Part shown: in pieces, positions 4,748 to 63,105 of the stretch
Layout: the number at the start of each line of letters is the position of its first letter
How positions within the stretch are numbered: the stretch's first letter is position 1
Assembly (NCBI GenBank): GCA_965202585.1
Contig: OZ241826.1
Span: forward strand, 20,708,001 to 20,772,000
Direction: 5' to 3'
From: Thalia democratica
Lineage: Eukaryota
Length of the DNA stretch: 64,000 bases
Notes under the pieces: model-generated
Databases searched by the model: none
Told to the model about the DNA's origin: nothing
Seen by the model: the letters and a program-made list of their open reading frames with translations, nothing else
Translations under genes and position numbers: made by a program

Positions 4748-5300
4748 TTGAATTTTTTATGTGATATCTATTTACCCGAGTTTAATAATTCTTCATTCAG
4801 TATGGGTTATAAAGTGTTTGTAGTTGAAATATACAATCAAGCACGATCTGAGGTATATGGGGACACATTCAAAATCAACCCAGCCAAAATCATCCCAGCC
4901 AAATTCGAGAACCGCTTCCCGATCGGTAGTAAAGTTAAGGATTAGGGGTTACAGAGATAATTAATAAACTAAATTCAAAAAATGTATAATATAGATTAAT
5001 AAGTAAAGAAAACATAAAGCAAAATTAAGAAGATTTTGAACGCTGGTTGATTTTGATAGTATTTCGGTAAATGATGGTGTTTCTAGAAAAAATCGCTCTG
5101 TTCACCATAACTATCTAATTAGTAAAGTCTATCAATTCTACTATAAAATAAAGATAATTTAAAGCATTTGGTGTAAATGATAGTAATACGAGCTTAATTA
5201 TTATGTTAATAACACATATGAAAACAAATTAACACTCAAATGCTGAGCTAGATAATAGTAAATATGGTGTGCAGCTATTAAAAAATACCAAAAATTCTAA
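4748..5300 (+). pseudogene. Kelch-family relic (3' half) interrupted by a 211-bp insertion
   Basis: FLCD...SSFSMGYKVFVVE...SEVY matches paralog FLCDMNKPKFCHSSFSMGNKMFV...EVY. Homology resumes at ~5071 (gatggtgtttctagaaaa, cf. YDxVSRK) and ends aaataccaaaaattcTAA (cf. KYPKF*). Confidence 0.75.
4860..5070 (+). mobile_element. 211-bp MITE/HINE-like non-autonomous insertion
   Basis: Splits the kelch codons for YD. Sub-terminal inverted repeat tcaaaatcaacccagc / gctggttgattttga, short internal subrepeats (aaaatcaacccagcc, aaaatcatcccagcc), a gttaaggattaggggtta tract, and a possible 3-bp ATG target duplication. Confidence 0.6.
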
Positions 5301-5634
5301 AATATCTTGTATTTGTACAGAAAACTTAATTCTATTTACAATTTAAACGATCAGTGATTTTTAAACTCAAAATATTGTTTGTCTTTTATTATATATGTTA
5401 ATTGAAATTGCTTATATGAGTTTTATTAAACTACTTTTGAATGATATGCTGTATGTTTATGTACTTTATATTGTTGTCAGATAAACACCAACAATACAAA
5501 ATATATTTGTTTTCATTAAGTTTAATGGTAGTTTCCTGTCACAAATTTACTAACTTAATTATAGTATTAGTTACGAAGTACATATAACAGCAAAATATTT
5601 ATACTATTAAGTTAAACTGTTCTGTATATTTAGG

Positions 5635-5955
5635 TTACGATGTTTATTTAATTCCACTGATTTAGTGCTTTTTTATACATATAACAATCAATCATCTACA
5701 TACTAACCGCAAATCACATACAAATTTTCAAAAACCAGCAAACACTCTAATACTTTAACTGGTTACAAAACGGTTTCAGTTTTTTCTAATATTTTGCCTT
5801 TGCAGAATACATTTCAAAAAATTATGTCCAATTACACTTTTCATCAGATCTACCAAGAACAAAACTATCAGAACGTATAACAGCTGTTTCGCTAAAACAC
5901 CTTTTACTTAGCATTGGACTTATTTTAACTAAAGTTTTAAATTCAGGACTATTAA
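5635..5955 (-). pseudogene. Kelch-family internal relic
   Basis: Minus strand gives SPEFKTLVKISPMLSKRCFSETAVIRSDSFVLG...FEMYSAK, homologous to KGPDFKTxVKxSPML...TAVIGSDIYVLGG...FEMYSAK, with stops. Confidence 0.7.
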
Positions 5956-6004
5956 ACTTGAAAATTTTATTTAAAACCGATATTGAAATATCGAAAATTG
6001 AAAA

Positions 6005-9000
6005 AACGTCAAATTACAGGCTTTAATATAAAAATAAATAGAATTTACAAAAATGACTACATTATACATCAACTTATTTTCTAAATTTTATTGCATTGCG
6101 TAATAAACTTTCAATGACATTTAGTCAATAAAAAAAAAAAATTGGTAGGATACTCACAATTATTTTTTAAATGACTAGATTTCTAATTAAAACATCTATT
6201 CATTAGATTATTTTTAGCTGTAACTTAACACTAAATGACCAAACTCATTTTAAACTAAAATTTTTATTTATTAATATATTAAAAATTTTTAAATGTTTTA
6301 GAGATAATTATAAAACTTTTTTTTACTAACAGCGTTTGTTATAATCTAATATAAACTTTATTATTATGTTTTGTTTTATTTATTTAATCAAGTAAGATTA
6401 TTTAATTTTTTTAAACAAAATTTTTGAAACATTTACTTCTACTTTACACTAAACAGGGTTTATCTAAATATCTAAAATATCAAATTCAAAATGTCACCTA
6501 CATCTTATAGTGTAAGATCTAAAGTTTTGTATGAAAATCGTTATTATAATCAGGATGAATGTTATTTTGTTATTTGTGGGAAAAAAAAAACAATTATGTA
6601 ATTACAAATAAAGTTTTCAAGTTAAAAGGTCGCGATTTTCAAACTACTGTCAAAATAAGCCCAATGTTAAAAAAAAGATTAAAGCAAAATAGCTGTAATT
6701 AGTTCTGATGTTTATGCTCTTGGTGGATATAATCAAAATTATATGTGGATTTTTTTTTTTTTGAAACGTAGTCTGCAAAGAAAAAAGTTTGGAAAGAATT
6801 GAAACAAACTCCTAGTGTGTTAAAATACTATAGCGTCTGTTCATTTATGAAAAGTATCTATCTAATTGGTGGTAGGTATGATAATTGTGATACTACAGAT
6901 TGTTTCAAGTATGATATAAAAGACAACAAATGGTATCATGTAGCAAGCTTACAAAGAGAGAGGAGTAATTCAGCTTGCACATTAATTGAGAAAAAATTGT
7001 TGTTACTGGACGGAATAAAATGTTTTATAGTAGATATTCTAGTTATTGTAATAAGTTGAAATCGGTAGAATCGTATGACCACCATGATAAAAAATGGACC
7101 TTTCTACGTGATATGAATGAACCAAAGTCCTATCATTCGTCATTTAGTATGGGTAATAAAATGTTTGTAAATGATTATACTAATCTATCAAATTTCGAGG
7201 TATATGACAATGTTCTAAAAAATTCACAATGTTATGTTTTAATCCCTCAATTTCAAAACTTCTGAAGATTAAACCATTTGGTGTAAATGATATGATTTAT
7301 ATTTTTGATTTTGACTTAAACATGTATGCTTATAACATGAGCGAATACAAGTTAAAAACAATTAGCTCTGTGCTTAAGACTGGGTTGACTCGTGCAGCTT
7401 TACAAAAATATCCAAAATTCTGAACTGACTAGCTAATGTACGAAAACTTTAGTTGTGAGGATAGAAATTTAATATTTGTTCATATCTATTTAATTTTGAT
7501 TTTGAAATATCTATGTACTTTTGTTTTGAAATGTGATTTGACTAAGTTTACTTGTTTCTTGTTTTAGTCTTTATATATGTTTTGATAAAATTTGTTGTAC
7601 TTTATTTTTAATAAATTACAACATAAACATTCGATTTAAATTACGTAATTCGATTTAAAAATATAATACAACAGTAAATAACTATAAACAAAAAAAAAAC
7701 AATTTTTTTTATAAGCTATCGAATTAAACTTTCTTTTAGAATTCTAAGTACTATATGAATAGAGCATAAAAAATGTAATTTAAAAAAATCGGTTGCTATC
7801 TTTTTTTTTACTATTTAGTTTAGTTATAATACGTTCCTTGTTTAATCTTTTAAATACTTAAATGTATTACCACATAGAAAAAAATAATTCGGTAATAAAC
7901 TCAAGTTGTACCGCAATGAATTATATAAATGACAAACTAATTACATCCCTTTAATTACAGTTACGAACTAATTAAAAGTGTTACGTCAACTATAAATTTC
8001 AGTTAACTAAGTTTATAAAAGCGTCATTAATTTTTTTTATCACAACACTTTGAACATTAAGTATTTTTAAAAACAAAAATAGCCTACCTTGCATTTCATT
8101 TAATTAAAAAAAAATCTCTAGTTGTTTAAACTTTAAGATATTATGCTATTGTTGAAAGAAGTTTATCAAGAAAATCTAAAAGTTATATTTAAAAAAAAAT
8201 ACTAATGAGATAGATGTTTTATTTATTATTAATAGACTCAACTTTGAGTGTTTTAAAAACATGTTTAGTAGCTTAATTACTTGTGTGTTTTTATATGTGT
8301 GTCATAATTACAATTGTGATTTTAGCATAAACAATAAAACTTGTTTTTTTTTTAACATATGTTGCGATAGAAAATAGTAAAAACTTTCTTTTGTATTTTA
8401 AAGAGCATTGTAATTTTCATTTATTACTGTATTTGTGTACAACTGGTTCCACTTTAGCTATATTTTTTTTTGTCATTCACTATATTCAAAGATAAAACAA
8501 ACTGTTTTTATAGACTGAACAAAATATTTTCCAAAAATTTAAAGTTATTAGTAATCTTTATACAAATTTTCTTGTTTAAGCTTAATTTATATAAAATTAG
8601 TATTTGAAAAGGATTCAGCAGAACGTTTTAAGATAATATTTTTTTCTCTAGACATGTTAATCTGTAAATTAGTATCATAAGTACAATGTAGTAGTAATTT
8701 TATGAAACTACTTATAACTTGATTGAAATTAAGTTTGACTAGTCTAAATTAAATGTTATCTAAAAATTTAAAATAAACATATTATAAGTATATTAACAAG
8801 AAATTAAAAAACAAATTTTCTTTTTATTATTAAGAAACAATTAATAAACATATTATTAAGAAAGTTATGTATTTCATGTATCAAAATATAAACTTATATT
8901 CTTAAATAAAATAATAGTACGCTATAGAGATCGTCAATTTTATAAATCCGAATAAAAAAGTAAACATGACAGTTTTGAAATAAATTCTTTATAACAACTT

Positions 9001-9080: not shown

Positions 9081-9105
9081 CAAATAAATATATATATATA
9101 CAAAA

Positions 9106-10840: not shown

Positions 10841-11215
10841 TTATAAGTTTAGATGTTTTTCAAAGCTACAAAAAGCCTAAAACATAAAACTATTGTTCAT
10901 TAAATTAACTTCAGAAATCCATTTATTCTCAACGACATTTTAAACAAACAAATTGAGTCTGCGATCTTTATCTACGTTAGATATTACGATCAATATAATA
11001 GTAAAGCTAAGTTTTTTAATAAAAGACTGCTAAGTTGACTTTTAAGTGGTTTAATTTTAAACAGCGTAATTTTTTTACAAATCTTGTCATACATTTCAGA
11101 ATGTGCTAAACAGTCTCTATCTATCACAAAAAGTTTATTATTCATACTAACTGGAGAATGTTCACATCTAGGTTCAATTATATCAGAAAACTCAAGAAAA
11201 ACTTTTCATTATCAT
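10841..11215 (-). pseudogene. Kelch-family 3' relic (not in ORF track)
   Basis: Minus strand reads SDIIEPRCEHSPVSMNNKLFVIDRDCLAHSEMYDKICKKITLFKIKPL and, after a frameshift, NVVENKWISEVNL...FEKHLNL*. Confidence 0.75.
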
Positions 11216-12072: not shown

Positions 12073-13018
12073 TTAGCATTTCGGGTACTTATGATAACCT
12101 GCACACGAAAAATTACCATTTAGCACTGCACCATTAAACACAAACTGATTTTCGTTTATACTAAAAATAGTCAAATTTAGCTCGGAATCAAAAATAAAGA
12201 TTTTATCATTAACACCAATGGCTTCTAAATTATTATTTAGTGATGTGAATAGATCAGAGGAAAACAATGTAAATTTTCTAGAAACGCTGTCATACACTTC
12301 AGAATCTTCAATATTTTCTCTTGAAATTACAAACAATTTGTTACCCATACTAAATGAAGAATGATAACGTTTACCTAAAATCAAATCTAATAAGAAAGTC
12401 AAATTGATTACATGATCATCATAAGATTCTACTGATTCCAATATGTCATATACATTTTCACCTCCACTAGCAACAATTTTGCCTTCAAAAACTGTACAAG
12501 CTAAATTCCTTTTTTTCTGTTTGTAAAGTTGCTACTTTAAACAACTCATTGTCTTTTATCTCATATTTATAACATAAATTTTCGCGGCTCACATACCAAT
12601 ACTCGTCATAATACTCGCTAGCAGATACTATCTTGTCAAAACGACCGCCAACTCATAGATATTTTTAATGAATGAACAAACACTATAGTTTTTAAATTCA
12701 GAGAAATCTGGTGATATTTTGAAAGATTTTTTTTCCCAGAATACATTTCAAAAAATATGTTCGATCACGATTTATACCAGAGCCAATCAAAACATAAATA
12801 TCAGAACCAATTACAGCTGTTCTGCACCAATATCTTCGTATCAACATCGTAGTAAGTTCAACAGTAATCTTAAAGTCAGGACCTTTTAGTTCTATAAATT
12901 TCCTTGGATCATCTTTTTCATTGTAATTGTAACAAGAAACAATGTAAAATTCATTTTGTTTGCATTAACGGTTTTTATACAAGACTGAATATTTTATCCT
13001 TTGAGATAAAGAGTTCAT
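12073..13018 (-). pseudogene. Kelch-repeat gene copy with stops and frameshifts
   Basis: MNSLSQRIKYSVLYKNR* (TAA at 12965-12967 where paralogs have Tyr), ELKGPDFKITVE, then ORF 12073-12441 ESVESYD...HSSFSMGNKLFV...KYPKC*. Confidence 0.85.
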
Positions 13019-14329: not shown

Positions 14330-15301
14330 TTATGTTTTGGGATGTTTCCGAAAAGTAGAGTAACCGGCAATAACGAAGTTATCTTTAAAAAAAAGATTTT
14401 CTAGTGTCCATTTATTTTTAACAATGTCGTACACATGAAATTTTAACTCATTAGATTCAAAATTGCTACAAAAATATACGAGTTTGTTATTTAAACTGAT
14501 AACTTTAAACTCGAAACTGTCATACATTGAACATAATGGTTTAGCATTCAACTTAGTAAATTTCCTAGAAATGTTTTCATACACCTCAGAAAAAGTAGTA
14601 TTATGTTTATCAATTACAAGTAATTTGTTACCTATAGTAACTGCAGAATGATCACATCTTGTTTTGATCATATCAGCAAATTTACTCCATTTGTTTTCAT
14701 GATGATCGTATGCTTCTACTGCTTTCAAATGTCTTCTTTTATTGTAACCTCCAGTAACAACAATTTTACCTTAAAAAACTGTACACGCTGAGTTACTTCT
14801 CTCTACTTGTAAGCTTGCTAGAATACTCCACCTGTTTTTTCTTGTTTCATACTTATAAAAACACTTTACAAAGTACTCAGAGTAGGCATTGTCAGAATCA
14901 TCATAGTATCGTCTAATAGAACCGCCAATTACATAAGTGCTCTTCATAAATGAACATACACTAAATTCCATCATATGATAATATGTCGTTTTCAGTTCTT
15001 TCCAACATTTTTTCTTTGCGGAATACATTTCAAAAGTTGACAACCAATTTTGTTTTTTATCATAACCACCAAGAACTAAAATGTCTGATCTAATTAAAGC
15101 TGTTCTGCATGACTTTCTTGCTGTTAACATTCCGCTCATTTTGAAAGAAGTTTTAAAATCAGGACCTTTTAGTTTTATAACTTCATTTGTAAGAACATCA
15201 TTGATTTTTACACCTCCACAAACCACAACATCAAACTCATCCTGATTGCAATAACAATTTTCATACAAAAATTATGGTATACATCGAAGATGTGTAATCA
15301 T
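14330..15301 (-). pseudogene. Full-length Kelch-repeat gene copy (~323 codons) with two in-frame nonsense codons
   Basis: One continuous frame from ATG 15301 to stop 14330. TAA at 15272-15274 (Gln position) and at 14771-14773 (VF*GK for VFEGK). No frameshift. Confidence 0.9.
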
Positions 15302-19796: not shown

Positions 19797-20727
19797 TCAA
19801 AATTTTGGATACCTTTGTAAAGCTGCACTTTTCAAGCTTTCAAGCACAGAACTATTAAATAATATCTGTATTCGCTCATGTTATAAGCATACAGGTTTAG
19901 GTCAAAATCGAAAAAAATAATAAAACCAATTACACAGAACGCTTGAATTTTTGGAAGTTTTGCAATTGAGGGATTAAAATAAAACATTGTAAATTTTCTA
20001 GAAACATTGTCATATACCTCGCAGTTTTTTGGATGACTACCATCAATTACAAACATTTTATTACCCATACTAAATGATGAATGACAGGACTTTGGTTCAT
20101 TCATATCACATAGAAAGTTCCATTTGTTTTCAAAATGATCATACAATTCTACTGATTTCAACCTATTACAATAACGATTATATCTATTATTAAACGTTTT
20201 ATTCCCTCCAGAAACAATAACTTTACCTTCGAAAACTGTGCAAGCTGAGTGACTTCTTTCTCTTTGTAAGCTTGCTACATGATACCATTTGTTGTCTTTT
20301 ATATCATACTTGTAACAATCTTTAGTAACACATTCATCATACCAACCACCAATTAGATAGATACTTTTCATAAATGAACAGAAGCTATAATGTCTTAACA
20401 CACCAGGAGTTTGTTTCAATTCTTTCCAAACTTTTTTCTTTGCAGAATACGTTTCAAAATAAAAAGTCCATATATAATTTGATTATATCTACCAAGAACA
20501 TAAATATCAGAACCAATTACAGCTGTTTTGCTTGAATCTTTGCTTCTTAACATTGGGCTTATTTTGACAGTAGTTTGAAAATCAGGACCTTTTAACTAAA
20601 TAGCTTCATTTTCAATTACATTATTACTTTTTCTTCCTAAACAAATAACAAAATCAAATTCATCCCGATTGCAATAATGATTTTCATTCAAAACTTGAGG
20701 TTTTCTTCTAAAAGGTGTAGGAAACAT
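19797..20727 (-). pseudogene. Kelch-repeat gene copy with one stop and two frameshifts
   Basis: MFPTPFRRKPQVL...AI*LKGPDFQ (TAG at 20596-20598), 1-bp loss in an A-run at ~20478, ORF 19832-20419, and a homologous QRYPKF* end at 19797 in another frame. Confidence 0.88.
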
Positions 20728-22689: not shown

Positions 22690-23178
22690 TAATACCTCAC
22701 CTGTTTTGTATAACTGGTTTACCAATAGTTTGTTAATAACATTATTTTGTTTATACTATGAAGGATAAATAACAATAACCATTTAACTCGTACATTTTAA
22801 TACTACCGCCAATTATATAAATACTTTTCATAAATAAGCAAGCACAATAGTTAACTAAATTACCAAAAATAGGTTATAATGGTTTCCAATGTTTAGTCTT
22901 TGCAGAAAACATTTCAAAAGAAAATGTCCATTTGTTTTTGTCATCATAACCATCAAGTATATAAATCTCAGAACCAACTACATATTTATAGCTTGAAAAC
23001 CTTGGTGTTAACATTGGACTTATTTTGACTGAAGTTCGAAAATCAGGACCTTTCAACTTGGTTGCTTCATTTGTAACTGCAAAATTGTATTTCTACCACC
23101 AATATTAATAATATTAAATTTATTCTGTTTGCAATAACGATTCTCATATAAAACTGAATATTTACCATTGTTAAACAT
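22690..23178 (-). pseudogene. Kelch-family 5' relic, 3'-truncated or decayed
   Basis: MFNNGKYSVLYENRYCKQ..., KGPDFRTSVKISPMLTPRFSS...GSEIYILDGYD...FEMFSAKTKHWK. Left boundary approximate. Confidence 0.75.
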
Positions 23179-32500: not shown

Positions 32501-32629
32501 ATATTTTGACTTGCCCTATTATTATGACCTAGTTCAGCTTGAATATTTCCACCCTGCAATGGCTGATAAGACCTCCTTAGGTTAATAGCGGAACGTGAAT
32601 AAGCTGATTTAACAGACCTAGTAAGAGGT

Positions 32630-44244: not shown

Positions 44245-44320
44245 GGTTTTAATAACATTTAGTTCATCCTTATCGCAAAAACGATTCTCATACCAAGTTG
44301 AAGTTTAACATTAAAAATTG
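44245..44320 (-). pseudogene. Short Kelch 5' relic
   Basis: Minus strand tggtatgagaatcgtttttgcgataaggatgaa = WYENRFCDKDE (cf. LYENRYCNQDE). Confidence 0.6.
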
Positions 44321-47736: not shown

Positions 47737-49381
47737 AGTAGCTTGGTTGTACGAAAACTTCAGTTGTGTGCATAGAAATTTAGTATTTGTACAAATCTAT
47801 TTGATGTTTTTTTCGTAATACCTATGTACTTTCCTTTTGAAATGTGATTTGACTATATTTACTTGTTGTTTGTTTTAGTATTAATACTTGTTTTCATAAA
47901 ATTTGCTGTATTTTTTTTTAAATAAATTACAAGATGCACAAAAAACTTTAAAGAGGTTTTGATTTAAAAATATAATGCAACAGTAAAAAACTATAAAACA
48001 TAAGACAGTTTTTTATAAACTATCAAATTAAACCACTTTTTGGTGATGAAAGTACTTTATGAATAGATTATAAATAATATAAATTTAAAAAAAAAGCGGT
48101 TGCTATCTTTTGGTTTTATCGTTTAGTTTATTTGTAATGCGTTCCTTGTTTGATCTTTTAAAATAATTAGACATATTATCACACAGATAAAAATATAGTT
48201 CGGTAATAAACACAAGATTTACCGCAATGAAATACAACGAACGATTAGTGACGAACTAATTACATCCACTTTGTTACAGTGACGAGCTAAATAAATGTAT
48301 TACGTCAACTAATAAATATCAATTAAGTAAGTTTACGAAAGCATCATAAAACATTTTTTTTTAACACAACTCTCAAAACATAAAAATGTTATATTATTTT
48401 AACATAAAAAAATTTTAACACATAAAAATTAAGTTTTTCTAAAACAAAAATAGTCTACCTTGCATATTAATTTAATTAAAAAAAATCTTTAGTTGTTTTA
48501 AGTTTCAAATTTAAACAAATACTAACGAGATAGATGATTTATTTATTATTTATAGATTCAGCTTTAAGTGTTTTAAAAACATGTTTAGTAATTTAGTTAC
48601 TTGTGTATTTCTATATTTGTGTCGTAGTTATAATTGTTTATTAAGCATAAAAAATAAAACTTGTTTTCTTAACATATGTTGAGATAGAAAGTTGTAAAAA
48701 GTTTTAAGCATTGTAATTTTTATTTTATTACTGTATTTTAAAAAATTGGTTCCACTTTAGCTAATATTTTTTTGTTGTCATTTACTATATTCAAAGATAA
48801 AACAAACTGTTTTTATAGACTTAACAAAAGAAATTTCAAAAAATTTAAAGTTATTTGTAATTTATATACGAATGTTTTTTTTGAGGACTCAGCAGAAAAT
48901 TTTAAGAATTTTTTTTTTGTGGCACGTTAATATAAAAACTGTTATCATGAGTACCATGTAGAAGTAATTTTACAAAAATAACTACAACTTGATCGAAATG
49001 AAGTTTAACTAGTCTAAATTAAATGCTTATCTAAAAATTCAAAACAAACATATTATAAGTATAATCATAAGAAATTGAAAAACAAGTTTATCTTTTTATT
49101 TAAATTAATAAGAAGTAATTAATAAACATATTATTAAGAGAGTTCTGTATTTCATGTATTAAAATATATGCTTATATTCTTAAATAAAATAAATTTAAGC
49201 AAAAAAAATCGTCAATTTTATAAAACTGATTAAAAAAGTAAACATGACAGTTTAAAAAAAAAATCGTTCTAAAAACTTTTTATTACTTTCTAAAGAGCTT
49301 TTTCTCATGTATTTCTTATTTTAATGTGTTTTATATTCATTTATGTTTTAATTATATAACATATAATATATATATTACATT

Positions 49382-51965
49382 TAACCCAATCACTTCTAAC
49401 CCAATTAAACCCGATCATTTCTAACCCGATCATATCTAACCCGATCATATCTTACCCGATCATTTCTAATCCGATCGTTTCTAACCCGATCATATCTAAC
49501 CCGATCATATCTAACCCGATCATATCTTACCCGATCATTTCTAATCCGATCGTTTCTAACCCGATCATATCTAACCCGATCATATCTAACCCGAGATTTA
49601 TTTAGCCGATCTGTATTAGTATATTACTTTTTTTTATATAAGGATTTGTTTTAAAAACAAATTAGTCTCAAATTTTTTTTTTTTTGAAGTTTAGTTTATT
49701 TTGTTTAAAATCAAACTTAATGTTCAAAAAGCTTTTGTTAAAATATAGTTGTTAATTCTAACTGGTTCATTTATTGTTTTGACAATAAGGTTTTTAATTG
49801 GATTATTTATTAAGTGTAGTTAATTAGTTTTAAAAAGCATTAGGAAAAGTATAAGTCTTTTGTATTGTAAAGAATAAATATTAAGTTTTGATAGTCGTCA
49901 ATATAAGAAATATAATGAGTATCGGAGCGGTTTAAGTCTATTCTGTACTTCCTTTTGAAATGATTCTATATGGTTAATGTATACTTTTAACTGTAGAAGC
50001 CATATTTAGGGAGAATTAATATGAAATACAATTTTTTAAAAATATTAATATCAGCGTTTATGAACTTTAAATAATACAGTTAATAAAATTTAGTAACTGT
50101 AATTATAATGGTGGTTTCATTTAGAATTAGTATCATTAAATTCTAAGTTCTTTAAACGAAAGTGTATACTGTTTAATACAAAGCCAAAAGTAGAGATAGA
50201 AGTTTTTTTAAACAATCAGAACTTGTCATTTACTCGAGCTTTAATTTAATTTTAATTCTTAAATCAATTGATAAATTGTATATAAAGATTAACTGTAATT
50301 AAGTATAATTAATTATGGTTAACTTTACAATGAAAGTTTAGTGTCGAAAACTTATTATTACGCATTTTTTCTTTTTCTTTTGAAATAAAATGTATGTAGG
50401 GCAAAATAAATTTACATTTTTCGTAAAATTTTAAAAGTTTTCAAAATTTAGAATTGCAAAAACACGATTATTCTCACGATTAATAGTAGATATTTCTAAA
50501 ATCATTTTCTTGATATCTTTTGAAAGTTATTGTTTTACAGGTTTTCAAAAACACAAAAATGTTTTGTGTAATAATCTTCTGGAAAAAAATTTGATTTAAA
50601 AGAAACAAAGAACTTATAGAGTTTTATAAAATTCTGCTACTAATTGTACTTAATTTAACTATAATTAATTTATTATTCTATATCAAAATGTTTTCTTTTT
50701 AATACTTATTTTGTATTTACTTACGTTACTTCAACTGCTCATAATAAAGGAACTTATTAATGATGTGAAATCTAGACGGTCAATCGACATAACAACTTTT
50801 GCGGTTTAGTTTTATGACATAACTATTTTAATAGCTAGTTTCTATTAAAAGCAATGCTTTTCCACTTATTATAACAAATTTTTTAACTTCTTCTAATGTT
50901 TGTTTGAATTCCATTATCTTAATAGAACTATTGAAGTTGCATAACAATTTGCATAAGTTATTAAGATGAAACTTAAAACTACCAAACTATAAAAGGTTAA
51001 TACATTAGTATGCAATAATATAACATTTACGTCAGACTTTTAATGTAGTTTCTAAACCGTAATATAAATTTTTTGTATCTGAATATTACAATTGTGAGAG
51101 TTTACATTTTAAAATTTGCTTATGTTAAAACTATTGTAGTCACGTTACTTACAATAAGATGAAACTAAAATGTAATTATCACTGCTTATTTTGAAATCCT
51201 ATAAGGAGAGTTCAAAATACTTTAAAGTAAACAATTTATTTAGTAAATTGTATATGATTAACGAAAAACGTCTCTTAAAGTGTATTGAAAAAACAACAAA
51301 AAAAAACTATAGAAAATACTAAAATTATGTGTAGGATAAAAAATCAAAAACTGAGGTAATAAAAATATATTAAGATTATGTTAAATTAATTTTAAAACTG
51401 AAATTTATACTATAAATATTTTTACGTAACACATTAAAATCATTTTGTTTTAAAGTAACTAAAAGTTAATATTTTTTTGTTTTAATAACTTCATTATAAC
51501 TAGTTTGTTATTGCATGGAATCTAGATTAAAAAATAAAAACGTAACATAAGTAAAATGGGTTAGAAACGATCGGGCTAGAAATGATCGGGTTAGAAGTGA
51601 TCGGGTTAGAAATAATCGGGTTTTATTGGGTTAGAAGTGATTGGGTTAGAAATGATTTTGTTAGAAATGATCGGGTTAGAAGTGATCGGGTTAGAAATGA
51701 TCTTGTTGGAATGATCGGGTTAGAAGTGATCGGGTTAGAAATGATCGGGTTAGAAATAATCGGGTTAGAAGTGATCGGGTTATAAGTGATCGGGTTAGAA
51801 ATGATCGGGTTAGAAGTGATCGGGATACAAGAGATCGGGTTTGAAGTGATCGGGTTTGAAAAGATCGGGTTAGAAGTGATCGGGTTAGAAGTGATCGGGT
51901 TAGAAGTGATCGGGTTAGAAGTGATCGGGTTAGAAATGATAGCGGGTTAGAAATGATCGGCTCCC
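49382..51965 (-). mobile_element. Left-truncated duplicate of the foldback-like element (arrays 49382-49593 and 51558-51960)
   Basis: Same loop and right arm as 39271-42089, with a different number of repeat units. Confidence 0.7.
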
Positions 51966-52898
51966 GTTGTCAATATATCCAGCTACTTTATCACTAAACC
52001 TTAACTACTTGATTAAAAACCATTTTATTCACTTACAACCTACTTTTTAACCTTTAAAACTGATGCCAATCTTGAACTAAATTTAAATAAAAGTATATAG
52101 TATACTAAACTATTATTTTTAAGTTTCTTTTTTTAATATTTAGTAATACTTTTCAACAATTGGTTAAAAATATGTCATATTTATATATAATAAAATATGC
52201 ATTGGACAAAATTAGTTTATTTTTCTTAAAAACTGTGAAAATATAAGATACCTCGTTTATCTTTGTACAATTAAGAACAAGTCAGAGGCTGCTTATTTTA
52301 AAAGAGTATTTAGTTATATAAAAAATTGAGCTTATTTTGTGTCGTTCTATATATTTTGTTTATTGAAGGATAAAAAAGCACTAAAATAAGTTTAGTCTAA
52401 GGACCTGGCGTATGATTAACATTATATATGTAAATATTGCCTATTTTAGTATTTAAAGTTTTTACTATTTTTTGGAGTGTTTCTTTTCGTCATTATAACA
52501 AAAATATTCATATTAATATTTTGCATTTGTTCTTGATGTACTTAACATATTTTTTTTTAGTTTTAGTTAACATTTATTTTAAAAGAATGGCCAAGTATAT
52601 TAAATGTGCACAACGTTGCCAAAATGTACAGGAGTTTTTTAAACTTTCTATTTTATTTTTGACAAAGCTATGTCAATTAGTCAAAAAGAGTATAACAAAA
52701 AAAAACGTTTTAATTCTTACACCAGTTTCATAACAAAATGTCACTTCAGAATTTTTATTCTTTGCAACAAAAATGTTTTGTCAAAATTAAATACAATAAA
52801 AATAAAAAAAACTCTGTATTTTTTGTGTAAATAATTTCGAAAACTAAATTGTCAAAACTGCTATTAAATTTATTCGTAAATTTTTAAACTTTTGTTAT

Positions 52899-53844
52899 TT
52901 ACCTTGGAATGTTTTCCGAAAGCGGAAAAAGTACGATGCAAAAAACTATTTTTTTCAATACATTTTCGAGACCCATTTGTTCTCATCGACGTTGTACACA
53001 TACAATTTTAGTTCATTATAGCAGTCTATATCGCAAAATAAAAACAAATTGTTACCGATACTAAATGTTTTAAAATTAGAATTTGTAAGTTTCCTATCCA
53101 GGTAAGTTATATTAAGCACTGCAAATTTTCTAGAAACTTTGTCATAAACATCAGAGGTTGCTATATTCCGTCCATCTATTACAAACATTTTATTATACAT
53201 ACTAACTGAAGAATGATGTTTTCTAGCTTGATTGATATTAGATAGAAATGACCATTCATTTTCGTTATGATCATATGATTGTACTGATTTCATTTTTCGG
53301 TTTATATTTTTACCTCCAATAACAACAATTTTAGCTGAACAAGCTTTTCCTATATTCAGTTTTGCTATCCTTTTCAAGCTATTAAGTTTTTTTTTAAAAT
53401 TTATAACGATCTTGTTTATGTTTGTACTCTTCAATACAACCGCCAAACACATAAACACTTTTCATTAACGAGCAGACACTAAAACAATTTAACTGCTTAG
53501 AAATGGGTTTCAATTCCTTCCAATGTTTTGCCTTTGCACAATAAATTTCAACAGAAAATATCCAGTTACGCTTTTTGCTATATCCACCCTAGTACATAAA
53601 TATTTGAACCAATTGCCGCTGATTTGCATGAGAACCTTGGTGTTAACATTGGACTCATTTTGACAGAAGTCTCGAAGTCAGGACCTTTTATTTTAGTAAC
53701 TTTGTTTATAGCAGCACCATAAATATTTTTACCTCCACAAATAACAACATCAAATTCATCTTGATTGCAATAACGATTTTTATACAAAGTTAAAGGTATA
53801 CCACGATAAAGTAAGGTCGTTTTCGTACAACTAATGAATAACAT
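52899..53844 (-). pseudogene. Duplicate of the 43016-43980 Kelch pseudogene with an extra 18-bp in-frame deletion and a 1-bp 3' deletion
   Basis: ACSAKIVVIGG versus ACLACTAFEGKIVVIGG in copy A; ORFs 52955-53458 and 53578-53859. Confidence 0.87.
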
Positions 53845-54104
53845 TTTAAACCTTAGCAAAAAGATATTGATATACCATTTAGGAAAGATACAAAGTAAGG
53901 TTTGATTAAGTACGTTATTAAGTTTTTTTTCTATAAAAACTAAACAAAAATTTATTTTTAACTTCCATTATGATAATGTTTAAATTTTAAAACAATCTTT
54001 CTCTCAAAATAAGAGATCATCAATTAATAATAAAACTTAGAAAACAATATGGTAAACACCTAAGAACACACTAAAGTTAAACTAAAATTAAAAACTTTCA
54101 TCGA

Positions 54105-54175
54105 GGTATAACATTTAATTTACCCTTATTGCAATAACGATTCTCATACCAAGTTGAAGGTTTATCATTAAAAAT
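54105..54175 (-). pseudogene. Short Kelch 5' relic (counterpart of 44245-44320)
   Basis: Minus strand KPSTWYENRYCNKGKLNVI. Confidence 0.6.
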
Positions 54176-56630
54176 TTACAATATCAGTAAGTTAAGTTTA
54201 AAACTATTTGAAATAATATTTATGTATATAACTTTAAAATGGACTAAATTAATTTTGTAAAAGTATTATCTTTATCAAATTACTACAGTGCAAATTTTGT
54301 AGCTGATTTAATTTTAACTATTAAAATAGTTAGTTTTAAGATAATAAAAGTATATATTTACATAAAGCTAAATTTAAATTTAACTGTAACACCATTTAAA
54401 CTGAATGCATTTATTAAGTACAGTATCTACTGTTACAGTTTTGAGAAAGTAAAAGTATATTCTATATTATTACTTATCATCCAGAATATTTTGTTATTGA
54501 AAATGAGAAAAAATAAATATATCTTTTGATATTAAACATTATAAATATTATTTGTTTACTTTATCGAATAATTGAGTAAGATAGAAGATAAATATATTAC
54601 ATATTCGTGTCGATAAGCTTTAAAAGTTTGTTAAACAAAAAACAATAAAATAGTCTCTAAATTTTTCAAGTACACTAATTAATATTAGTTACTAACACTA
54701 ACTTAATAATTATGAAAACCTAATTGTTTCAAATTATTGTTATTATTTTTTGATTTAGTATTTTTACAGTCTTTTTATAATTTTGAAATTAGCATATAGC
54801 TTTTCAAAAATATTTTCAATTTTAACATATCAATTAGTAATAATATATCAAATTACTATATTAATATGAACTATTTACATTAATTATTATCATGTCAAGA
54901 TGCTTACCGCGATGTAATTTTTAAAGAAAACACTTGCAGCCCTCGGACTAAAACACACTTAACTAGATCAAAAAAAAATAAATTGTGATTACGACTAATA
55001 GTTAGGTTCAAAATTTAACAATTAATACTCACTATTGTTTTATTACTGCTTATCGTATTATTCTTACAGTTTAGAATAATATTGTCAGAGCGTTTTATAC
55101 ATTTTTTAAAATAATTGTAACCTGTTAGTGATTTCTTAAACGAAATTGTCAGTATATACAATTGCTGATATTTGATTCAGTAGAAAAAGACATGGCTATT
55201 TATTTTAAACACATATTTCAAATTTAGGACATTTATCAGCTCAAATACTTTATTTATAACTATAATAATTATAAAATAAGATTTTTTTATAAAAATTTTG
55301 TAACTTACATAAAATTATCAAGTGAGGTGACGTACGTCACATTATAATAGAAAACTAAAATTAAAATGTATTTTTAATTTCTAAGTTAGTTGTACTAAAA
55401 ATTAAATAAGTAGAATTAGAAATTGTACAGAAATAATGTTTTTTTTTATTTGTTTCCGGATGATCAAAGGCAAGAGTAATTCTTTTTTAAGTTAGCGCGT
55501 TTAAAGTTTTGTGCAATTTGTAACTTTTTTTAGTTAACTACAGAAAGTTCTGTCAGTTTGCGCCATTAAATGGTTTTGCACAGGTATAGTTTACCCTAAA
55601 TGAAATAAAGAGTGATTAATTTTCGTATTCAATATTAAACATCATACATTGTTTGTATTGTATAAACCAAAGGTTATTCTGTTTTATTTTTCATAGTTAA
55701 TATTTTTATATAAACAATTTCAATGCACCTGTATGACTAAATTTTTAATAAATACCAAACCTCAAATTGTATTTTCAGTGTAAGTTTTTTCTTTTTTTGT
55801 ATTTAGCTTTTATTCACAAGATACTATTTTTATTTTACCTTTAATAAAACCTTTAATTTTAATATAATAGATTGAAGGTTATACGAATTAAATTAATTAA
55901 TAAAAGTTTGTAACTCAAAAATCAGTAAGCTTTATGCTTCTACAAACATGCCGAAGGTAAATATGGCTTGCAAAAGAAAAGCTTGCAATAAAAACAACAA
56001 TTAAGGAAGAGACATAAAGTAAAAAAAAAATATTCATCTGTAATGAATAAAATTATAGAAATTAATGTTAAAACGAGCGAAAGCTTCTTTTCATTTATAT
56101 ATGATAGAGTAGCTATTGACTTTTATTTATTAAAACAACTCTTACATTGTAAAACCAGAATGTTACAGATTTTTGTTAGAAAAGAACAAAATACTACGTT
56201 TAAATAATATTTTATAAAAAAAAAAGAAATTAAATAATGTTATTAAGATTGTATAATAAACTTTTAATGACAATTTTCATCGAAAATGTACTTTTGTAAG
56301 GATAATTTGGATACTAGATTTTCCATTAGGTTGTTTTCAGCTATTATTAAAAACTAATTGAAGAAAATTTATTTTAATCAAAGTACTTGTTATTTAAATA
56401 TAGTAAAATAACTTTAAGACATTTTCAGAACTTTTTTTTTTAATTGTTGTTAATTTTGTTGCTAACTTAATTATGAACTATTAGCTATTAAGACTAAAAG
56501 CTTTTATGATATTTTAGCATTTAATTTGGATTTTTCTGTTTTATCTTTTTAATAAAATACTTGAAAAGTACTATGACTATCATGCACTATACAGGACTTT
56601 ATATCTAACTTTTTAGTTTTCAAAGCCAAA

Positions 56631-57602
56631 ATGTTTTTTACACCTTTTAGACGAAGACCTCAAGTTTTGTATCAGAATCGTTGTTGTAATCAGGATAAAT
56701 TTGATATTATTATTTGTGGTGGTAGAAAAAGAAATTGTGTATCTACAATTGAAGTTATAAAGTTAAAAGGTCCTGATTTTCAAACTACTGTCAAAATGAG
56801 CCCAATGTTAAGAAAAAAAAAATTAAGCATAACAGCTGTAATTGGTTCTGATATTTATGTTCTTGGTGGATATGATGAAAATGGTATAAGGAATCCTTCT
56901 TTTGAAACGTATTCAGCAAGAAATAGAAATTGGATAGAATTGCCACAAGCGCCTAGTATAATAAAATATAATAGCGTCTGTTCTTTTATGAAAAGTATCT
57001 ATCTAATTGGCGGTTATTTTAAAAATTATCATTTTGGTGATGATGTCTATAACGATGAATGTTATGCTAATAAACTTTATAAGTTTGAGTTAAAAGAAAA
57101 CAAATGGTATCAAGTAGCAAGCTTACAAACAAAGAGAAATAATTCAGCTTGTACAGTTTTTGAAGGTAAAATTATTGTTACCGGAGGTGATATAACCTTT
57201 GTTGATAGACATTACTTAACTTATCGTACAACATTTAAATAAGTAGAATCTTATGATCACCATGACAACAAATGGACCTTTTTATGTGATATGAATAAAC
57301 CCAAATTTTGTCATTCGTCATTTAGTATGGGTAATAAAATGTTTGTAATTGATGGTAGTCATCCAAAAAACTGCGAGGTATATGACAATGTTTCTAAAAA
57401 ATTTACAATGTTTTATCTTAATCCCTCAATTGCAAGACTTCCAAAGATTCAAGCGTTCGGTGTAAATGTTATAATTTATATTTTTGACTTTGAGCTAAAC
57501 ATGTATGCTTATAACATGAGCGAAAACAAGTTGATATTTAAAAGTTCTGTGTTTGAGGGTAGCTTGGAACGTGCAGCTTTAGAAAGGTATCCAAAATTCT
57601 GA
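56631..57602 (+). pseudogene. Duplicate of the 46765-47736 Kelch gene with the same in-frame TAA (57240-57242)
   Basis: Only two amino-acid differences from copy A in the ORF track (N/D, F/L); shared stop. Confidence 0.9.
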
Positions 57603-60261
57603 AGTAGCTTGGTTGTACGAAAACTTCAGTTGTGTGTATAGAAATTTAGTATTTGTACAAATCTATTTGATGTTTTTTTCGTAATACCTATGTATTTTTC
57701 TTTTGAAATGTGATTTGACTATATTTACTTGTTGTTTGTTTTAGTATTAATATTTGTTTTCATAAAATTTGCTGTATTTTTTTTTTAAATAAATTACAAG
57801 ATGCACAAAAAACTTTAAAAAGGTTTTGATTTAAAAATATAATGCAACAGTAAATAACTATAAAACATAAGACAGTTTTTTATAAACTATCAAATTAAAC
57901 CACTTTTTGGTGATGAAAGTACTTTATGAATAGTTTATAAATAATATAAATTTAAAAAAAAGCGGTTGCTATCTTTTGGTTTTATCGTATAGTTTATTTG
58001 TAATGCGTTCCTTGTTTGATCTTTTAAAATAATTAGACATATTATCACACAGATAAAAATATAGTTCGGTAATAAACACAAGATTTACCGCAATGAAATA
58101 CAACGAACGATTAGTGACGAACTAATTACATCCACTTTGTTACAGTAACGAGCTAAATAAATGTATTACGTCAACTAATAAATATCAATTAAGTAAGTTT
58201 ACGAAAGCATCATAAAACATTTTTTTTTAACACAACACTCAAAACATAAAAATGTTATATTATTTTAACATAAAAAAATTTTAACACATAAAAATTAAGT
58301 TTTTCTAAAACAAAAATAGTCTACCTTGCATATTAATTTAATTAAAAAAAATCTTTAGTTGTTTTAAGTTTCAAATTTAAACAAATACTAACGAAATAGA
58401 TGATTTATTTATTATTTATAGATTCAGCTTTAAGTGTTTTAAAAACATGTTTAGTAATTTAGTTACTTGTGTATTTCTATATTTGTGTCGTAGTTATAAT
58501 TGTTTATTAAGCATAAAAAATAAAACTTGTTTTCTTAACATATGTTGAGATAGAAAGTTGTAAAAAGTTTTAAGCATTGTAATTTTTATTTTATTACTGT
58601 ATTTTAAAAAATTGGTTCCACTTTAGCTAATATTTTTTTGTTGTCATTTACTATATTCAAAGATAAAACAAACTGTTTTTATAGACTTAACAAAAGAAAT
58701 TTCAAAAAATTTAAAGTTATTTGTAATTTATATACGAATGTTTTTTTTGAGGACTCAGCAGAAAATTTTAAGAATTTTTTTTTGTGGCACGTTAATATAA
58801 AAACTGTTATCATGAGTACCATGTAGAAGTAATTTTACGAAAATAACTACAACTTGATCGAAATGAAGTTTAACTAGTCTAAATTAAATGCTTATCTAAA
58901 AATTCAAAACAAAAATATTATAAGTATAATCATAAGAAATTGAAAAACAAGTTTATCTTTTTATTTAAATTAATAAGAAGTAATTAATAAACATATTATT
59001 AAGAGAGTTCTGTATTTCATGTATTAAAATATATGCTTATATTCTTAAATAAAATAAATTTAAGCAAAAAAAATCGTCAATTTTATAAAACTGATTAAAA
59101 AAGTAAACATGACAGTTTAAAAAAAAATCGTTCTAAAAACTTTTTATTACTTTCTAAAGAGCTTTTTCTCATGTATTTCTTATTTTAATGTGTTTTATAT
59201 TCATTTATATTTTAATTATATACACATACTGTAAATTATATTATCAGAGACAAACATTAACTTGATTATAAAAATTTTAACATCTTATAATCACTTAAAT
59301 TTCATTAAAATATAAAACGGGTTTTATTTTATACTCAAAACTCGACCTCTACAATTTTTTATAAAAGAAAAAGCAGTTGTATAACTTTATGAAGTACAAT
59401 ATATTTATTTTTAAATATTCTTGCTCTCCTTAGGTATATTTCTAATAACTTTTTTAGCATAAAAATTAGATAATAAAGATTAAAGGAACACTAAGTGATT
59501 TTTTAATGCTGGTTTTCAGCAAAAACAAATAAATCTAGTAACGCTTTTTCAACCATTAAGATGTAACTATTAATTTGTAAATACTATCAACTTTTTTTTT
59601 TTATTTTGTATAAGTATAATATTAAAAAAAATTCGTAATACATGACAAAAATATAGTTTTGAATGTCAATTTATTAACTGTTTTATAAAACCTAATGTTT
59701 TATGTTTATAAAAAAATTTAAACACTTACAAACAACTAACACAATGTTCTTAAGTGTATAAATAAGCTATGAATTCTAAACTTCGGTGTTGTAGAATTTA
59801 GTCGTTTTTTTTAATTGTTAAAGGTATAAAATTTTTGGCTTTTATTTATTTTTATAGTCAGAAAAGTTTAGTATAAATTAAATGTTTTATTTTAATTACC
59901 TAGCGTTTTATTTAAATATTTTAAAATTTAATGTTTTTAAATCTTAAAATTCAAACTACTTTAATAGAGTAAAAAATGATACATTTTATTATTCTATGAA
60001 ATTAATATTTTACCTACTAGTTATATTAAAACAAACTTTTACCTTCAACTGGATGTTTCTTATGAAATTTTATATAAGTATTATTTAGGTTTTAAATAAA
60101 TAAAAGTACTGTATAACTAAATCAGAATATTTATTACAACAAAAGATGTTTAAATAACGTTTTAACGTTTTAAAACTTGAAAATTAAAATAAGTAAAAGA
60201 ATCTAGTAATTTATTGAACAAAACTAGTTTAAAAAACATCCATACTGCTTTAAGTGTTACT

Positions 60262-60915
60262 TTACATTTTAGGATATTTTTCAGTAGCTTAACAAACTGC
60301 ATGCATGAACTTATCTTTTATAAAGTTATTTTCAGAAACCCGTTTTTTCCCATTTACGCTGTACAAATACAGTTTCAGTGTATTATAATTGTCAAAGTCA
60401 GAAAATACAACTAATTTGTCACTAAAACTGAGTATTTTAAAGTTAGAACTGCTAAGTTGATTTTCATATGGATTGATAACATTTTGAACTTTCTAGAAAC
60501 ATATATCATTTCTAGAAATATACTTCAGAGCGTGTTAATCACCATCTGCCTACTACGTTTAATTTTTACCTACCGTAACTACAGAATGGTTACAATTGGC
60601 TTTATTCATATCAGACAAATGTTTCCATTCATTATTACGATGATCATATGACTCTACTGATTTCATGTTTTTTCCACAATATTTACATCCAGTAACAACA
60701 ATTTTACCTTCAAAAACTGCACAAGCTAAATTACTCCTCTGAGTTTGTAAGCTTGGTAATTTATACCAGTTGATTTTTAGAATTAACTTATAAAAATCAT
60801 ATTGATATTGTTCCAAATCAAATTCTCAGGTACCTTCTAAATATACATTCGCCAATTACATAAACACTTTTCATAAATGAATATACACTATAACTTTCTT
60901 GTCGCATGTAGTCTA
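60262..60915 (-). pseudogene. 5'-truncated Kelch relic
   Basis: YSVYSFMKSVYVIG, SLQTQRSNLACAVFEGKIVVTG, KSVESYDHRNNEW; ends EKYPKM* at 60262. Confidence 0.82.
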
Positions 60916-62119
60916 AAAGTTAGTTTAAAGTGTCAAGCCAGTATAATTTTACATTTATTAATGACTAGTTTTATGCATTTTAGAATAAAACATTTTTTAA
61001 CTATTTTTTTTATTATTTGAACAAAATTGCATTTAACTTTATGTAACTCAACTTAACATATTGTTATATCGATAAAATTCTAAAAGTGACGTATTATTTG
61101 AAGTTTTAATAGTTTGTTTATTTCGGTATATTAAAAGATAAATCCTGTTAAATTATTTATATTGATGATATTTTTTATGTATTAGATCAATAATTACAGA
61201 CATAAAATATTGACATAAAAATTTTAAAGATTCTTTTTAACGTAAAAAATAAGCAAATTTTCTACAAAATCAAAAGCATTAGACATAAACATTAAACATT
61301 TACGTTATGAGTACTTTTTTTCAATCATTATTACTTTTTGTTAAAGTGTGGTTTAATCACTATTAAGTTGATAAAACTTATGTGTATGTTTTTAAATTTT
61401 TATTATTTATATTTTAAGGTTTTTTATAATCTCAGAAAAAAAAAGTTTATAGTATATATTTATTTTACGATCAAGACTTCAAGTTTTGTAGTGTTTTTAA
61501 CTAATTTTTTACCAGAACAAAAACTAGAGCAAATTTATGCGTAAAATTTTAAAGTAAAGTAAAAATCTCTTCATCAATTACTAACACTATGCTTATGAGG
61601 TTTTATTTAAATGTATTTATTTTTGCAACCACAATTACTTTAAACTAGTTAAATAATTGAAAAAATTTTTATAAGGTTTTTTAGTTTTTTCTAAATATGT
61701 AGTCTTATTTTTCACTCACTCAAAATAAAATATTGTCTTAATCTAGTTTTTTAAACTTTTGTTTGTCAACAACTTGTTTATGCATTAAAATACCGAAGCT
61801 CAAAAAAATTTCAATATAATATTTTTTCTTAAATTATTGCTTTATTCTTTAGCGAAAAATTTGTTATAAATGATTTATTTTACTAAACTAAGAAGATATA
61901 TATTTTTCCAATAAGTTATAAATTAATCAAAGAATAACTAGTTCATGAAACAAAATGCATTGACTAATATTATGTTTAGAAAAAACGTTAGAATATAAAA
62001 ACTATTTTTAAACTGAGGCATTTTTATATAACAAAAATATCTTGGTATATAACAAAAAAACATATACAAGTTAAAAATAAAAGAAAAACCAATTGGTAAA
62101 TGTAATATAAAGTTAAATG

Positions 62120-63105
62120 TTAAAAAAGCTTGTCTGTAAAGTATTTATACATTACACAGCTTTTTTTAATAATTGGAAGTTTTTCAATTGTTGAAAAACG
62201 CTGAAACATAAAGCTATTTTTCGACAAAATTTTTACATAAACCCATCTTTTCTCATCGAAGTTGTAAACACACATTTTCAGTCTATATGAGTAGAAGCCA
62301 GAAATTATAAACAATTTGCTATTGATACTTAGTGCCTTTTAGTAAAATTGTTAGAAAGACCGATCAATGGCTGATTGATACTGAAGTAAGAAAACTTTCT
62401 AGACACACTGTCATATACTTCAGAATGTGTCAGATTATTTGTATATACTACAAACACTTTATTACCCATACTAACTGCAGAATATTTACATCTATTTTCA
62501 ATCATATCTGGTAAAAATGTCCACTTGTTCTCATGATTATCATATGACTCAACTGATTTTAGCTTTTTTTTATTATGACCTCCTGTAACAATAATTTTAC
62601 CTTCAAAAACTGTACAAGCTGAATCTTTTCTCTCTGTTTGTAAACTTGCTACATTAGTCCACTTGTTTAATTTTGATTCATATTTATAACAGTCATTAAC
62701 GTCATATTCATCAATAAAGTCATCAAATTCGTAAATTTGAAAACAACCGCCAATTACATAAACATTTTTTTTAAACGAACACACACTATAGTATTTTTGC
62801 TGTCCAGGAACATTTTTCAACTCCTTCCAACTTTTAGTTTTTGCAGAATACATTTCAAAAGAAGATATCAAATTATCTGTATTTTCAAATCCACATACAT
62901 AAATATCAGAACCAATTACAGTTGATAAGCTTTCATGTCTTGGTTTAAACATTGAATTCAGACTGTCAGAAGTTTTAAAATCAGGACCTTTGAAAATATT
63001 TACTTTACTTGTGTCTCTACAAATAACGACATCAAACTCATCTTGATTGCAATAACGATTTTCATACAAAAATGTAGGTTTCCTTCTTTGAGATGATGAA
63101 CTCAT
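62120..63105 (-). CDS. Least-damaged Kelch-repeat gene copy: 258 codons open from ATG 63105, then a single frameshift in an A-run near 62340
   Basis: MSSSSQRRKPTFLYENRYCNQDEFDVVIC...SRKFSYF...NNF, then KALSINSKLFIISGFYSYRLKMCVYNFDEKRW in the next frame (ORF 62120-62314). Could be intact if the indel is a sequencing error. Confidence 0.6.

Follow-up and report, generated by a model that had tools for sequence, protein, structure and literature searches.

We analyzed a 64,000-nucleotide stretch of the Thalia democratica genome (contig OZ241826.1, positions 20,708,001 to 20,772,000 of the forward strand), referred to here as the window, for the array of Kelch-propeller loci that it contains. The window is probably a local cluster, for the most part dead, from a very large family of intronless genes that is specific to the tunicate lineage, encodes only the propeller, and derives from BACK-Kelch genes. 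A family hidden Markov model (HMM) was built from 53 full-length homologs and run on the six-frame translation of the window. This search identified 16 Kelch loci, on both strands, at a domain E-value of 0.01 or less. Relaxed thresholds added 2–3 weak fragments for a total of 16–18 loci within positions 4727–63108, close to the ~19 copies that a preliminary description of this DNA had counted at 4748–63105. Twelve of the loci are near-full-length and the remainder are fragments. The GC content of the window is 20–26%, except for 33% at 26–34 kb.

Decay of the Kelch copies

Lesions were called by frameshift-aware alignment of each locus to its nearest intact relative, a gene of 322 aa located ~90 kb upstream of the window (L033:8985–9953, − strand). 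None of the 12 near-full-length copies is intact, and 10 of the 12 contain in-frame stops. Three distinct full-length copies run in a single frame and are interrupted by stops only: the copy at 25520–26476 (+), which has one TAA at 25784 as well as long blade-3 and blade-4 loops; the copy at 46765–47733 (+), with one TAA at 47374, along with its duplicate at 56631–57599 (+), in which the same TAA lies at 57240; and the copy at 14336–15301 (−), with TAA codons at 15274 and 14773. The first and last of these were also delimited by the family HMM, the last was listed with 2 TAA in the whole-assembly search as well, and the first appears to have been inactivated recently. Two copies are broken by frameshifts only. 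That at 62174–63105 (−) has one frameshift near 62340 and no stop, its longest open reading frame (ORF) being 263 aa at 62329–63120, and that at 52903–53823 (−), a duplicate of the copy at 43019–43959, has 3 frameshifts and an internal deletion. The remaining near-full-length copies have 1–3 stops and 2–5 frameshifts each, and are located at 6491–7420 (+; TAA 6680, TAG 6769, and ~5 frameshifts, all in or adjoining A/T runs), 12079–13018 (−; TAA 12967, ~4 frameshifts, long blade-3 loop), 19800–20727 (−; TAG 20598, 2 frameshifts, short blade-3 loop), 36589–37501 (−; 3 stops, 2 frameshifts), 43019–43959 (−; TAG 43658, 2 frameshifts), and 60265–61143 (−; 3 stops, ~5 frameshifts), the last being a strongly degraded copy also detected by the family HMM.

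The fragments were found with the family HMM. At 4727–4864 (+) there is a match to HMM positions 193–238, within blades 4/5 (hmmsearch on six frames, E 1.4e-6), and at 5642–5980 (−) a match to positions 40–157, blades 1–3 (E 1.5e-16), which was also found by tblastn. A C-terminal fragment (HMM ~202–310) lies at 10868–11193 (−) and an N-terminal fragment (HMM 9–138) at 22787–23172 (−). The relaxed search added a weak N-terminal fragment at 44227–44319 (−; HMM 8–38, E 0.037), with a duplicate at ~54107–54172. Adjoining the fragment at 22787–23172 is a tandem repeat (23351–23825) of ~15 copies with a period of 32 bp, a higher-order period of 220 bp, and a 68–76% match between copies.

A potential concern with the analysis of lesions is whether the copies are truly intact, the breaks representing homopolymer assembly errors or stops that are read through. 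Many of the frameshifts do fall at A6–A10 or T9–T11 runs, and the copies at 62174 and 52903 carry frameshifts only. However, the stops in 10 of the 12 copies are in-frame TAA, TAG, or TGA substitutions, lesions are common to duplicates that are 97.5% identical, and about two thirds of the scored family members elsewhere in the genome are open under the standard code, so that no change of code is needed. We consider an artefactual origin of the breaks to be extremely improbable.

The copies show 25–50% protein divergence but only one to a few lesions each, which indicates that most of the divergence arose while they were functional and that inactivation was comparatively recent. With the flanks sampled as alternate 10-kb blocks, the local cluster (~C1:20.61–20.80 Mb) was found to contain only 3–4 intact ORFs among ~28 loci, and is thus unusually decayed relative to the family. 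The preliminary description had proposed the array as a candidate diversified recognition repertoire; because none of the 12 near-full-length copies is intact, and because the latest duplication copied genes that were already dead, the array cannot be a working one.

Duplication and recombination within the cluster

Self-BLAST and Tandem Repeats Finder (TRF) revealed a tandem segmental duplication at 39499–59228, made up of the units 39499–49363 and 49382–59228. The 9.9-kb units are 97.5% identical; in each of them lie inverted 15-mer arrays and two Kelch copies, both dead. Lesions recur within these young duplicate pairs: 46765 and 56631 have the same TAA at residue 203, and 43019 and 52903 the same frameshift at residue ~80. 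The copies at 46765–47733 and 56631–57599 differ by 2 nonsynonymous and 0 synonymous changes. The common lesions indicate that already-dead genes were duplicated; duplication in this region is consequently a mechanical process and does not imply that selection favored additional copies. There are older duplications too, both direct and inverted, involving units of 2.3–2.6 kb with ~80% identity that comprise the gene plus up to 1.7 kb of 3′ flank. The rapid duplication and decay proposed in the preliminary description are thus borne out by the self-comparison and the lesion alignments.

Homology between copies reaches ~0.9 kb upstream and 0.2–1.7 kb downstream of the ORF, and a search of the copy ends yielded neither spliced-leader nor poly-A relics. 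For these reasons an origin by retroposition was rejected, and the copies are considered to have arisen by duplication at the DNA level. As a separate observation on the spliced leader, the ascidian-type 16-nt sequence ATTCTATTTGAATAAG, which we take from the Ciona literature to be that leader, has 1,299 dispersed copies in the genome compared to 9 for the reversed control. Some of its occurrences are close inverted pairs. The 1,299 copies mark a tunicate genome.

The 15-mer arrays associated with the segmental duplication have the unit GGGTTAGAAATGATC, which contains the telomere-like GGGTTA, and are located at 39281–39711, 41682–42084, 49408–49594, and 51558–51960. They form inverted pairs ~2 kb apart within the 9.9-kb unit and generate long spurious ORFs; they may represent a foldback element or a satellite.

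The cluster has also been entered by a transposon. A long terminal repeat (LTR) retrotransposon occupies 27080–34280 (−), as determined by self-BLAST, Pfam matches, and its GC content of 33% versus 24%. Its LTRs (27080–27633 and 33727–34280) are 94.6% identical and enclose ORFs for reverse transcriptase and RNase H. In the Kelch cluster upstream of the window, an ORF of 498 aa (L033:104–1600, +) contains a reverse-transcriptase domain, possibly from a non-LTR or Penelope-like element.

Comparison of the intact upstream gene L033:8985–9953 with the dead copy at 46765–47733 revealed a mosaic. The two are 65–88% identical over nt 1–680, and 92–98% identical from nt 685 through 600 bp of the 3′ flank, the synonymous divergence (dS) being 0.28 for the former stretch and 0.08 for the latter. 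The copy at 19800–20727 forms a different mosaic against the same intact gene. The mosaic identity and the unequal dS of the two parts show directly that paralogs exchange sequence by recombination. These same mosaics could be taken to mean that the dead copies serve as a library of loop variants that gene conversion transfers to those few genes of the cluster that are intact, a role played by the pseudo-V genes of chicken immunoglobulin loci and by the silent antigen-gene archives of parasites; nt 1–680 of the mosaic hold both of the loops described below as variable. However, the tract exchanged or homogenized is the conserved 3′ half and not the part bearing the loops, and ordinary unequal crossing-over would by itself produce one or two mosaics in any tandem array. 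We consider such a donor role to be very unlikely.

Fold, relatives, and genomic extent of the family

The family protein is a six-bladed propeller of the KLHL type, approximately 305–340 aa in length, which follows a short conserved leader (LYENRYCNQ). Pfam searches matched Kelch_1 (E 9e-24) and related Kelch models, in which repeats of ~45–50 aa carry four hydrophobic residues ahead of GG and, further on, spaced Tyr and Trp. An AlphaFold2 model based on an alignment of 57 sequences contains six four-stranded blades, with a mean predicted local distance difference test (pLDDT) score of 89.6 and a predicted template modeling (pTM) score of 0.88, and agrees with the blade numbering used in the preliminary description. 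Foldseek placed designed Kelch proteins at the top, the best natural matches being KLHL17, KEAP1, KLHL12, KLHL20, and KLHL3 with template modeling (TM) scores of 0.72–0.75. A profile of the 57 members matched IVNS1ABP (1.6e-56) and KLHL3 (1.3e-48), then KLHL20 (~1e-47), KLHL12, and KEAP1. Model, Foldseek, and profile search together confirm the earlier assignment to the KLHL/KEAP1 type of propeller. The loop that follows the GG of blade 3 is poorly predicted (pLDDT ~60), and that of blade 4 is predicted as an extended hairpin. In Kelch domains, the loops joining strands B to C (BC) and D to A (DA) form the substrate pocket on the upper face (PMC3597819), so that the earlier placement of the B-C loops on the substrate face agrees with Canning et al. 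2013 (PMC3597819).

The BTB-BACK-Kelch adaptors of Cullin-3 (KLHL/KEAP1) and the family in the window have in common the six-blade propeller, the GG/Tyr/Trp repeat signature, and variable BC loops on the upper face (PMC3597819). In contrast to KLHL proteins, the window family lacks BTB, 3-box, and BACK, and with them any known route to Cullin-3 or to dimerization. Its genes are intronless and its candidate loci number in the thousands, compared to the tens of KLHL genes in an animal genome. KLHDC2, KLHDC3, and KLHDC10 resemble it as stand-alone six-blade Kelch propellers of similar size, and the generic Pfam model PF24681 (KLHDC2/KLHL20/DRC7 Kelch repeats) scores 57–62 bits, above its cut-off of 50. 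In the profile search, however, the closest relatives of solved structure are KLHL proteins, and the KLHDC genes are single-copy and conserved. A Cul2 or BC box was not seen, although no search aimed at one was made.

A search of the whole assembly (802 Mb) with two members as queries returned 5,637 first-look candidates for one and 5,299 for the other. Among the ~125 hits scored per search, about two thirds had uninterrupted intronless frames of 300–350 aa (approximately 86 of 126 without a stop); these integrity fractions refer to the scored hits, not to all first-look candidates. The family forms clusters on many chromosomes, the largest at C1:13.4–14.9 Mb. The flanking GC content of ~25% equals the genomic background, indicating that the genes reside in ordinary host DNA and not in an island. 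The closest homologs outside the genome come from a Tara Oceans marine metagenome and share as much as 81% identity with genes of the assembly. They point to pelagic tunicates and show that a related organism still carries intact ORFs of the family.

One metagenomic relative (P0055) has a BACK domain followed by the same NRYCNQ linker and propeller. The BACK part of this protein yielded 2,854 first-look candidates in the genome, mostly intact intronless frames of 470–510 aa, with a giant cluster of BACK-Kelch genes at C1:114.5–116.3 Mb and members in many other places. No BTB or BACK match was found by Pfam in any ORF of the window or in the intact L033 ORF, which matched only Kelch models. 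Consistent with this, tblastn with the BACK part of P0055 matched only the 15–20 aa linker in the window and in 41 loci, and intact ORFs begin ~20 aa ahead of blade 1. The N-terminal motif VLYENRYCNQ(D/E)EF (residues 13–23) ranks with the most strongly conserved segments of the protein (no change at R17 or C19 in 57 sequences) and is modeled with low confidence (pLDDT ~54). Its NRYCNQ core is the same as in the BACK-Kelch linker of P0055, and the motif is a remnant of that linker. The Kelch-only family is likely a truncated offshoot of the equally expanded BACK-Kelch family, its likely parent. These findings uphold the earlier view that this is not a housekeeping KLHL gene, the family being huge, lineage-specific, and without BTB or BACK.

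The high copy number and the absence of introns could also be explained if the genes were transposon cargo or relics of an integrated large DNA virus. The genes are AT-rich as well as intronless and very numerous, retroelements lie nearby, and large DNA viruses commonly carry Kelch and PARP-like genes. Against this origin, the GC content does not depart from that of the genome, homology between copies fades gradually with no fixed termini, no terminal repeats of the copies were found, the copy ends lack spliced-leader and poly-A relics, and the clusters span megabases on many chromosomes. A mobile or viral origin thus seems hardly credible.

Loop variability and selection

We compared nine non-redundant copies from the window and, for the family as a whole, 57 members. 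The conserved blade scaffolds noted in the preliminary description are borne out, the motifs quoted there being present; identity among the nine window copies is 0.91 for strand A of blade 3, 0.84 for strand A of blade 4, and 0.86 for strand C of blade 4. The loops that follow the GG of blades 3 and 4 have identities of only 0.27 and 0.31 in these copies, are 42–49% gapped, and range from 7 to 21 aa. Across the family, BC loops range in length from 3–27 aa (blade 4), 4–22 aa (blade 3), 2–17 aa (blade 2), 2–15 aa (blade 1), and 4–16 aa (blade 6), and the DA loop between blades 5 and 6 from 10–38 aa. Column entropy of the blade-3 and blade-4 BC loops is 2.6–2.8 bits, which is not above that of other loops (3.2–3.5 bits). 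Sequence divergence is as great or greater in the BC loops of blades 2 and 5, in the DA loops 2–3 and 5–6, and in most of blade 6. What is conspicuous is the very low entropy (0.1–0.9 bits) of blades 4 and 5 in their strands and bottom turns. The two loops singled out earlier as hypervariable do therefore vary strongly in length and sequence, but they are not uniquely variable; they stand out mainly in their length range and in their contrast with the very conserved blade 4.

Searches of sequencing runs with a window copy and the intact neighbor matched only DNA-type runs. Three of these, mapped on L033:4200–10000, gave a ~50-fold higher summed depth over the blade-4 segment. Note that the mapped runs consist of 170–330 bp unitigs and that paralogs cross-map at 90% likeness; the excess is consistent with a blade-4 segment that is near-identical in many paralogs.

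The enrichment in Tyr and Asp first reported for both loops applies only to that of blade 3, where it is modest and about twofold. This loop contains 10.4% Tyr and 9.8% Asp, compared to 6.2% and 4.5% elsewhere in the protein and to an AT-rich neutral expectation of 7.9% and 2.5%. The long blade-3 loops are mutually alignable, and their aromatic/acidic pattern is also found in a metagenomic homolog from another sample, indicating a conserved loop type rather than free variation. The comparison to antibody complementarity-determining regions (CDRs) consequently does not hold, the long blade-3 loops being one diverged homologous loop and not independent inventions.

Codon-based tests were performed on 23 intact genes of the C1:13.4–14.9 Mb cluster (71–96% pairwise protein identity), using our own GY94/F3x4 likelihood code and a fixed tree; the window copies are too diverged and broken for such tests. 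The ratio omega (dN/dS) was 0.45 for the whole gene, 0.26 for strands, 0.19 for the termini (mainly the N-terminal leader), 0.59 for DA loops, 0.66 for the blade-3 and blade-4 BC loops, 0.71 for the other BC loops, and 0.94 for the bottom turns (AB and CD). Nucleotide identity is 0.82–0.91 in the ORF versus ~0.76 in the flanks. The whole-gene omega and the greater conservation of the ORF indicate that the intact genes are under purifying selection, with the two loops weakly constrained. The value for the two loops is not above 1, does not differ from it (twice the log-likelihood difference, 2dlnL, of 2.2), and is similar to that of other loops.

Site models gave a divided answer. On one tree, M2a was favored over M1a with a 2dlnL of 36.3, placing ~5% of sites at an omega of 2.8, and the best sites were one each in the BC loops of blades 3, 4, and 5 and one in a bottom turn of blade 1. 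Since recombination between paralogs is demonstrable, the test was repeated on three segments with their own trees, giving 2dlnL values of 2.7, 3.7 (the segment with both loops), and 12.0 (site 223 in the blade-5 BC loop). The site-model signal was thus obtained on the single tree but not for the two-loop segment on its own tree, and the case for positive selection in the blade-3 and blade-4 BC loops is weak on these sequence data.

These results bear on the proposal that the family is an intracellular recognition repertoire engaged in an arms race, with pathogens, selfish elements, or self/non-self determinants as targets or with its members acting as ubiquitin-ligase decoys, specificity residing in the blade-3 and blade-4 BC loops, with the array as part of the fast turnover of the family. 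The family is indeed huge, clustered, and lineage-specific, evolves by birth and death, and contrasts a conserved scaffold with length-variable loops on a known substrate face. The single-tree test adds sites at P > 0.9 in the blade-3, -4, and -5 BC loops, and 10 of the 13 sites at P > 0.5 lie on BC or DA loops. Minimal PARP-domain genes have co-expanded and are partly interspersed with the Kelch clusters; PARP-domain genes are often linked to antiviral conflict. On the other hand, omega for the two loops is no higher than for other loops or bottom turns, the test on their own segment is non-significant, and recombination inflates site tests of positive selection. The shared pattern of the long blade-3 loops across copies and samples and the death of every window copy also argue against such a repertoire. 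In ordinary KLHL and KBTBD paralogs the BC loops vary widely, from 3 to 20 residues (PMC3597819), and BC-loop variation is therefore not diagnostic of an arms race. The arms race is a hypothesis for the intact members elsewhere, one we regard as rather unlikely, and is inapplicable to the dead array of the window.

The explanation we favor for the window is that of a largely dead cluster within a propeller-only family. Its members would descend from BACK-Kelch genes by loss of BTB and BACK, through which KLHL proteins are connected to Cullin-3. They would undergo birth and death through tandem and inverted DNA-level duplication of 2–10 kb units comprising the gene and its flanks, with recombination between paralogs yielding mosaics, and with inactivation through stop codons, frameshifts at A/T runs, and transposon insertion. 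Since dead genes are copied as well, duplication would be a mechanical process and not a selected one. The intact members elsewhere may act as cytosolic target-binding modules, in which a common partner would be bound by the conserved blades 4–5 with their AB and CD turns and by the N-terminal motif, and the variable BC and DA loops of the upper face would set target specificity. Loop diversity in the window would for the most part stem from weak constraint, from indels, and from recombination during the time when the copies were still alive, with few positively selected sites at most.

Several points weigh against this explanation. Three of the four best sites among the ~5% at omega 2.8 in the single-tree test lie in BC loops of blades 3–5, and the blade-5 site survives the segment-wise test, so that some adaptive diversification is possible. 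The subfamily used for the selection tests (C1:13.4–14.9 Mb) has short loops, whereas that of the window is long-looped. Several of the homopolymer frameshifts could be assembly errors. The putative function of the intact ORFs is deduced from purifying selection, and the partner-binding role of the conserved face is something that we only infer.

Nematode and plant MATH-BTB, F-box, and plant F-box-Kelch genes likewise form large, clustered, lineage-specific families with birth-and-death evolution and many pseudogenes, and combine a conserved scaffold with variable target-binding surfaces. Our comparison draws on what Thomas is said to have reported on expanded adaptor families in Genome Research in 2006. 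MATH-BTB and F-box proteins retain a ligase-docking domain (BTB or F-box), whereas the window family consists of the target-binding propeller only, and positive selection is not established for it. Two papers describe expanded F-box and MATH-BTB adaptor families (PMC3030570, PMC4091423), and one of them argues that neutral 'genomic drift' acts in such families (PMC3030570). Like these, the window family is expanded and adaptor-like, its scaffold conserved and its binding face variable; what is new is the reduction to the propeller alone.

No paper was found in the literature that mentions both Kelch and thaliaceans or that describes a Kelch expansion in tunicates, and the tunicate Kelch-only family is apparently undescribed. 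With possibly thousands of intronless propeller-only genes, it would rank among the largest gene families of the genome, derived from ubiquitin-ligase adaptors but lacking the parts that dock to the ligase. Provided that the intact members are expressed, they would constitute a natural library in which a single scaffold bears many binding faces, and a clean test case for adaptive diversification versus neutral 'genomic drift'; the window itself mainly shows how such clusters die. A more speculative idea, to which we give little credence, is that stand-alone Kelch, BACK-Kelch, and minimal PARP proteins make up an undescribed intracellular variable-recognition system of pelagic tunicates, in which the constant face (blades 4–5 and the N-terminal motif) would dock a common effector, the variable upper loops would bind diverse targets such as viruses or selfish elements, and decayed arrays like that of the window would supply sequence through recombination.

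The window also contains an intact ORF of 221 aa at 2933–3598 (+) that encodes a PARP catalytic domain only (PF00644, E 3.5e-12). It belongs to an intronless minimal PARP family with 1,054 first-look candidates in the genome; of the 150 scored, most are intact at 210–280 aa and some lie inside much longer frames. Five PARP copies are located in or adjoining the Kelch cluster (C1:20588158, 20597432, 20683160, and 20695084, and the window's own), and other minimal PARP genes are found near other Kelch clusters.

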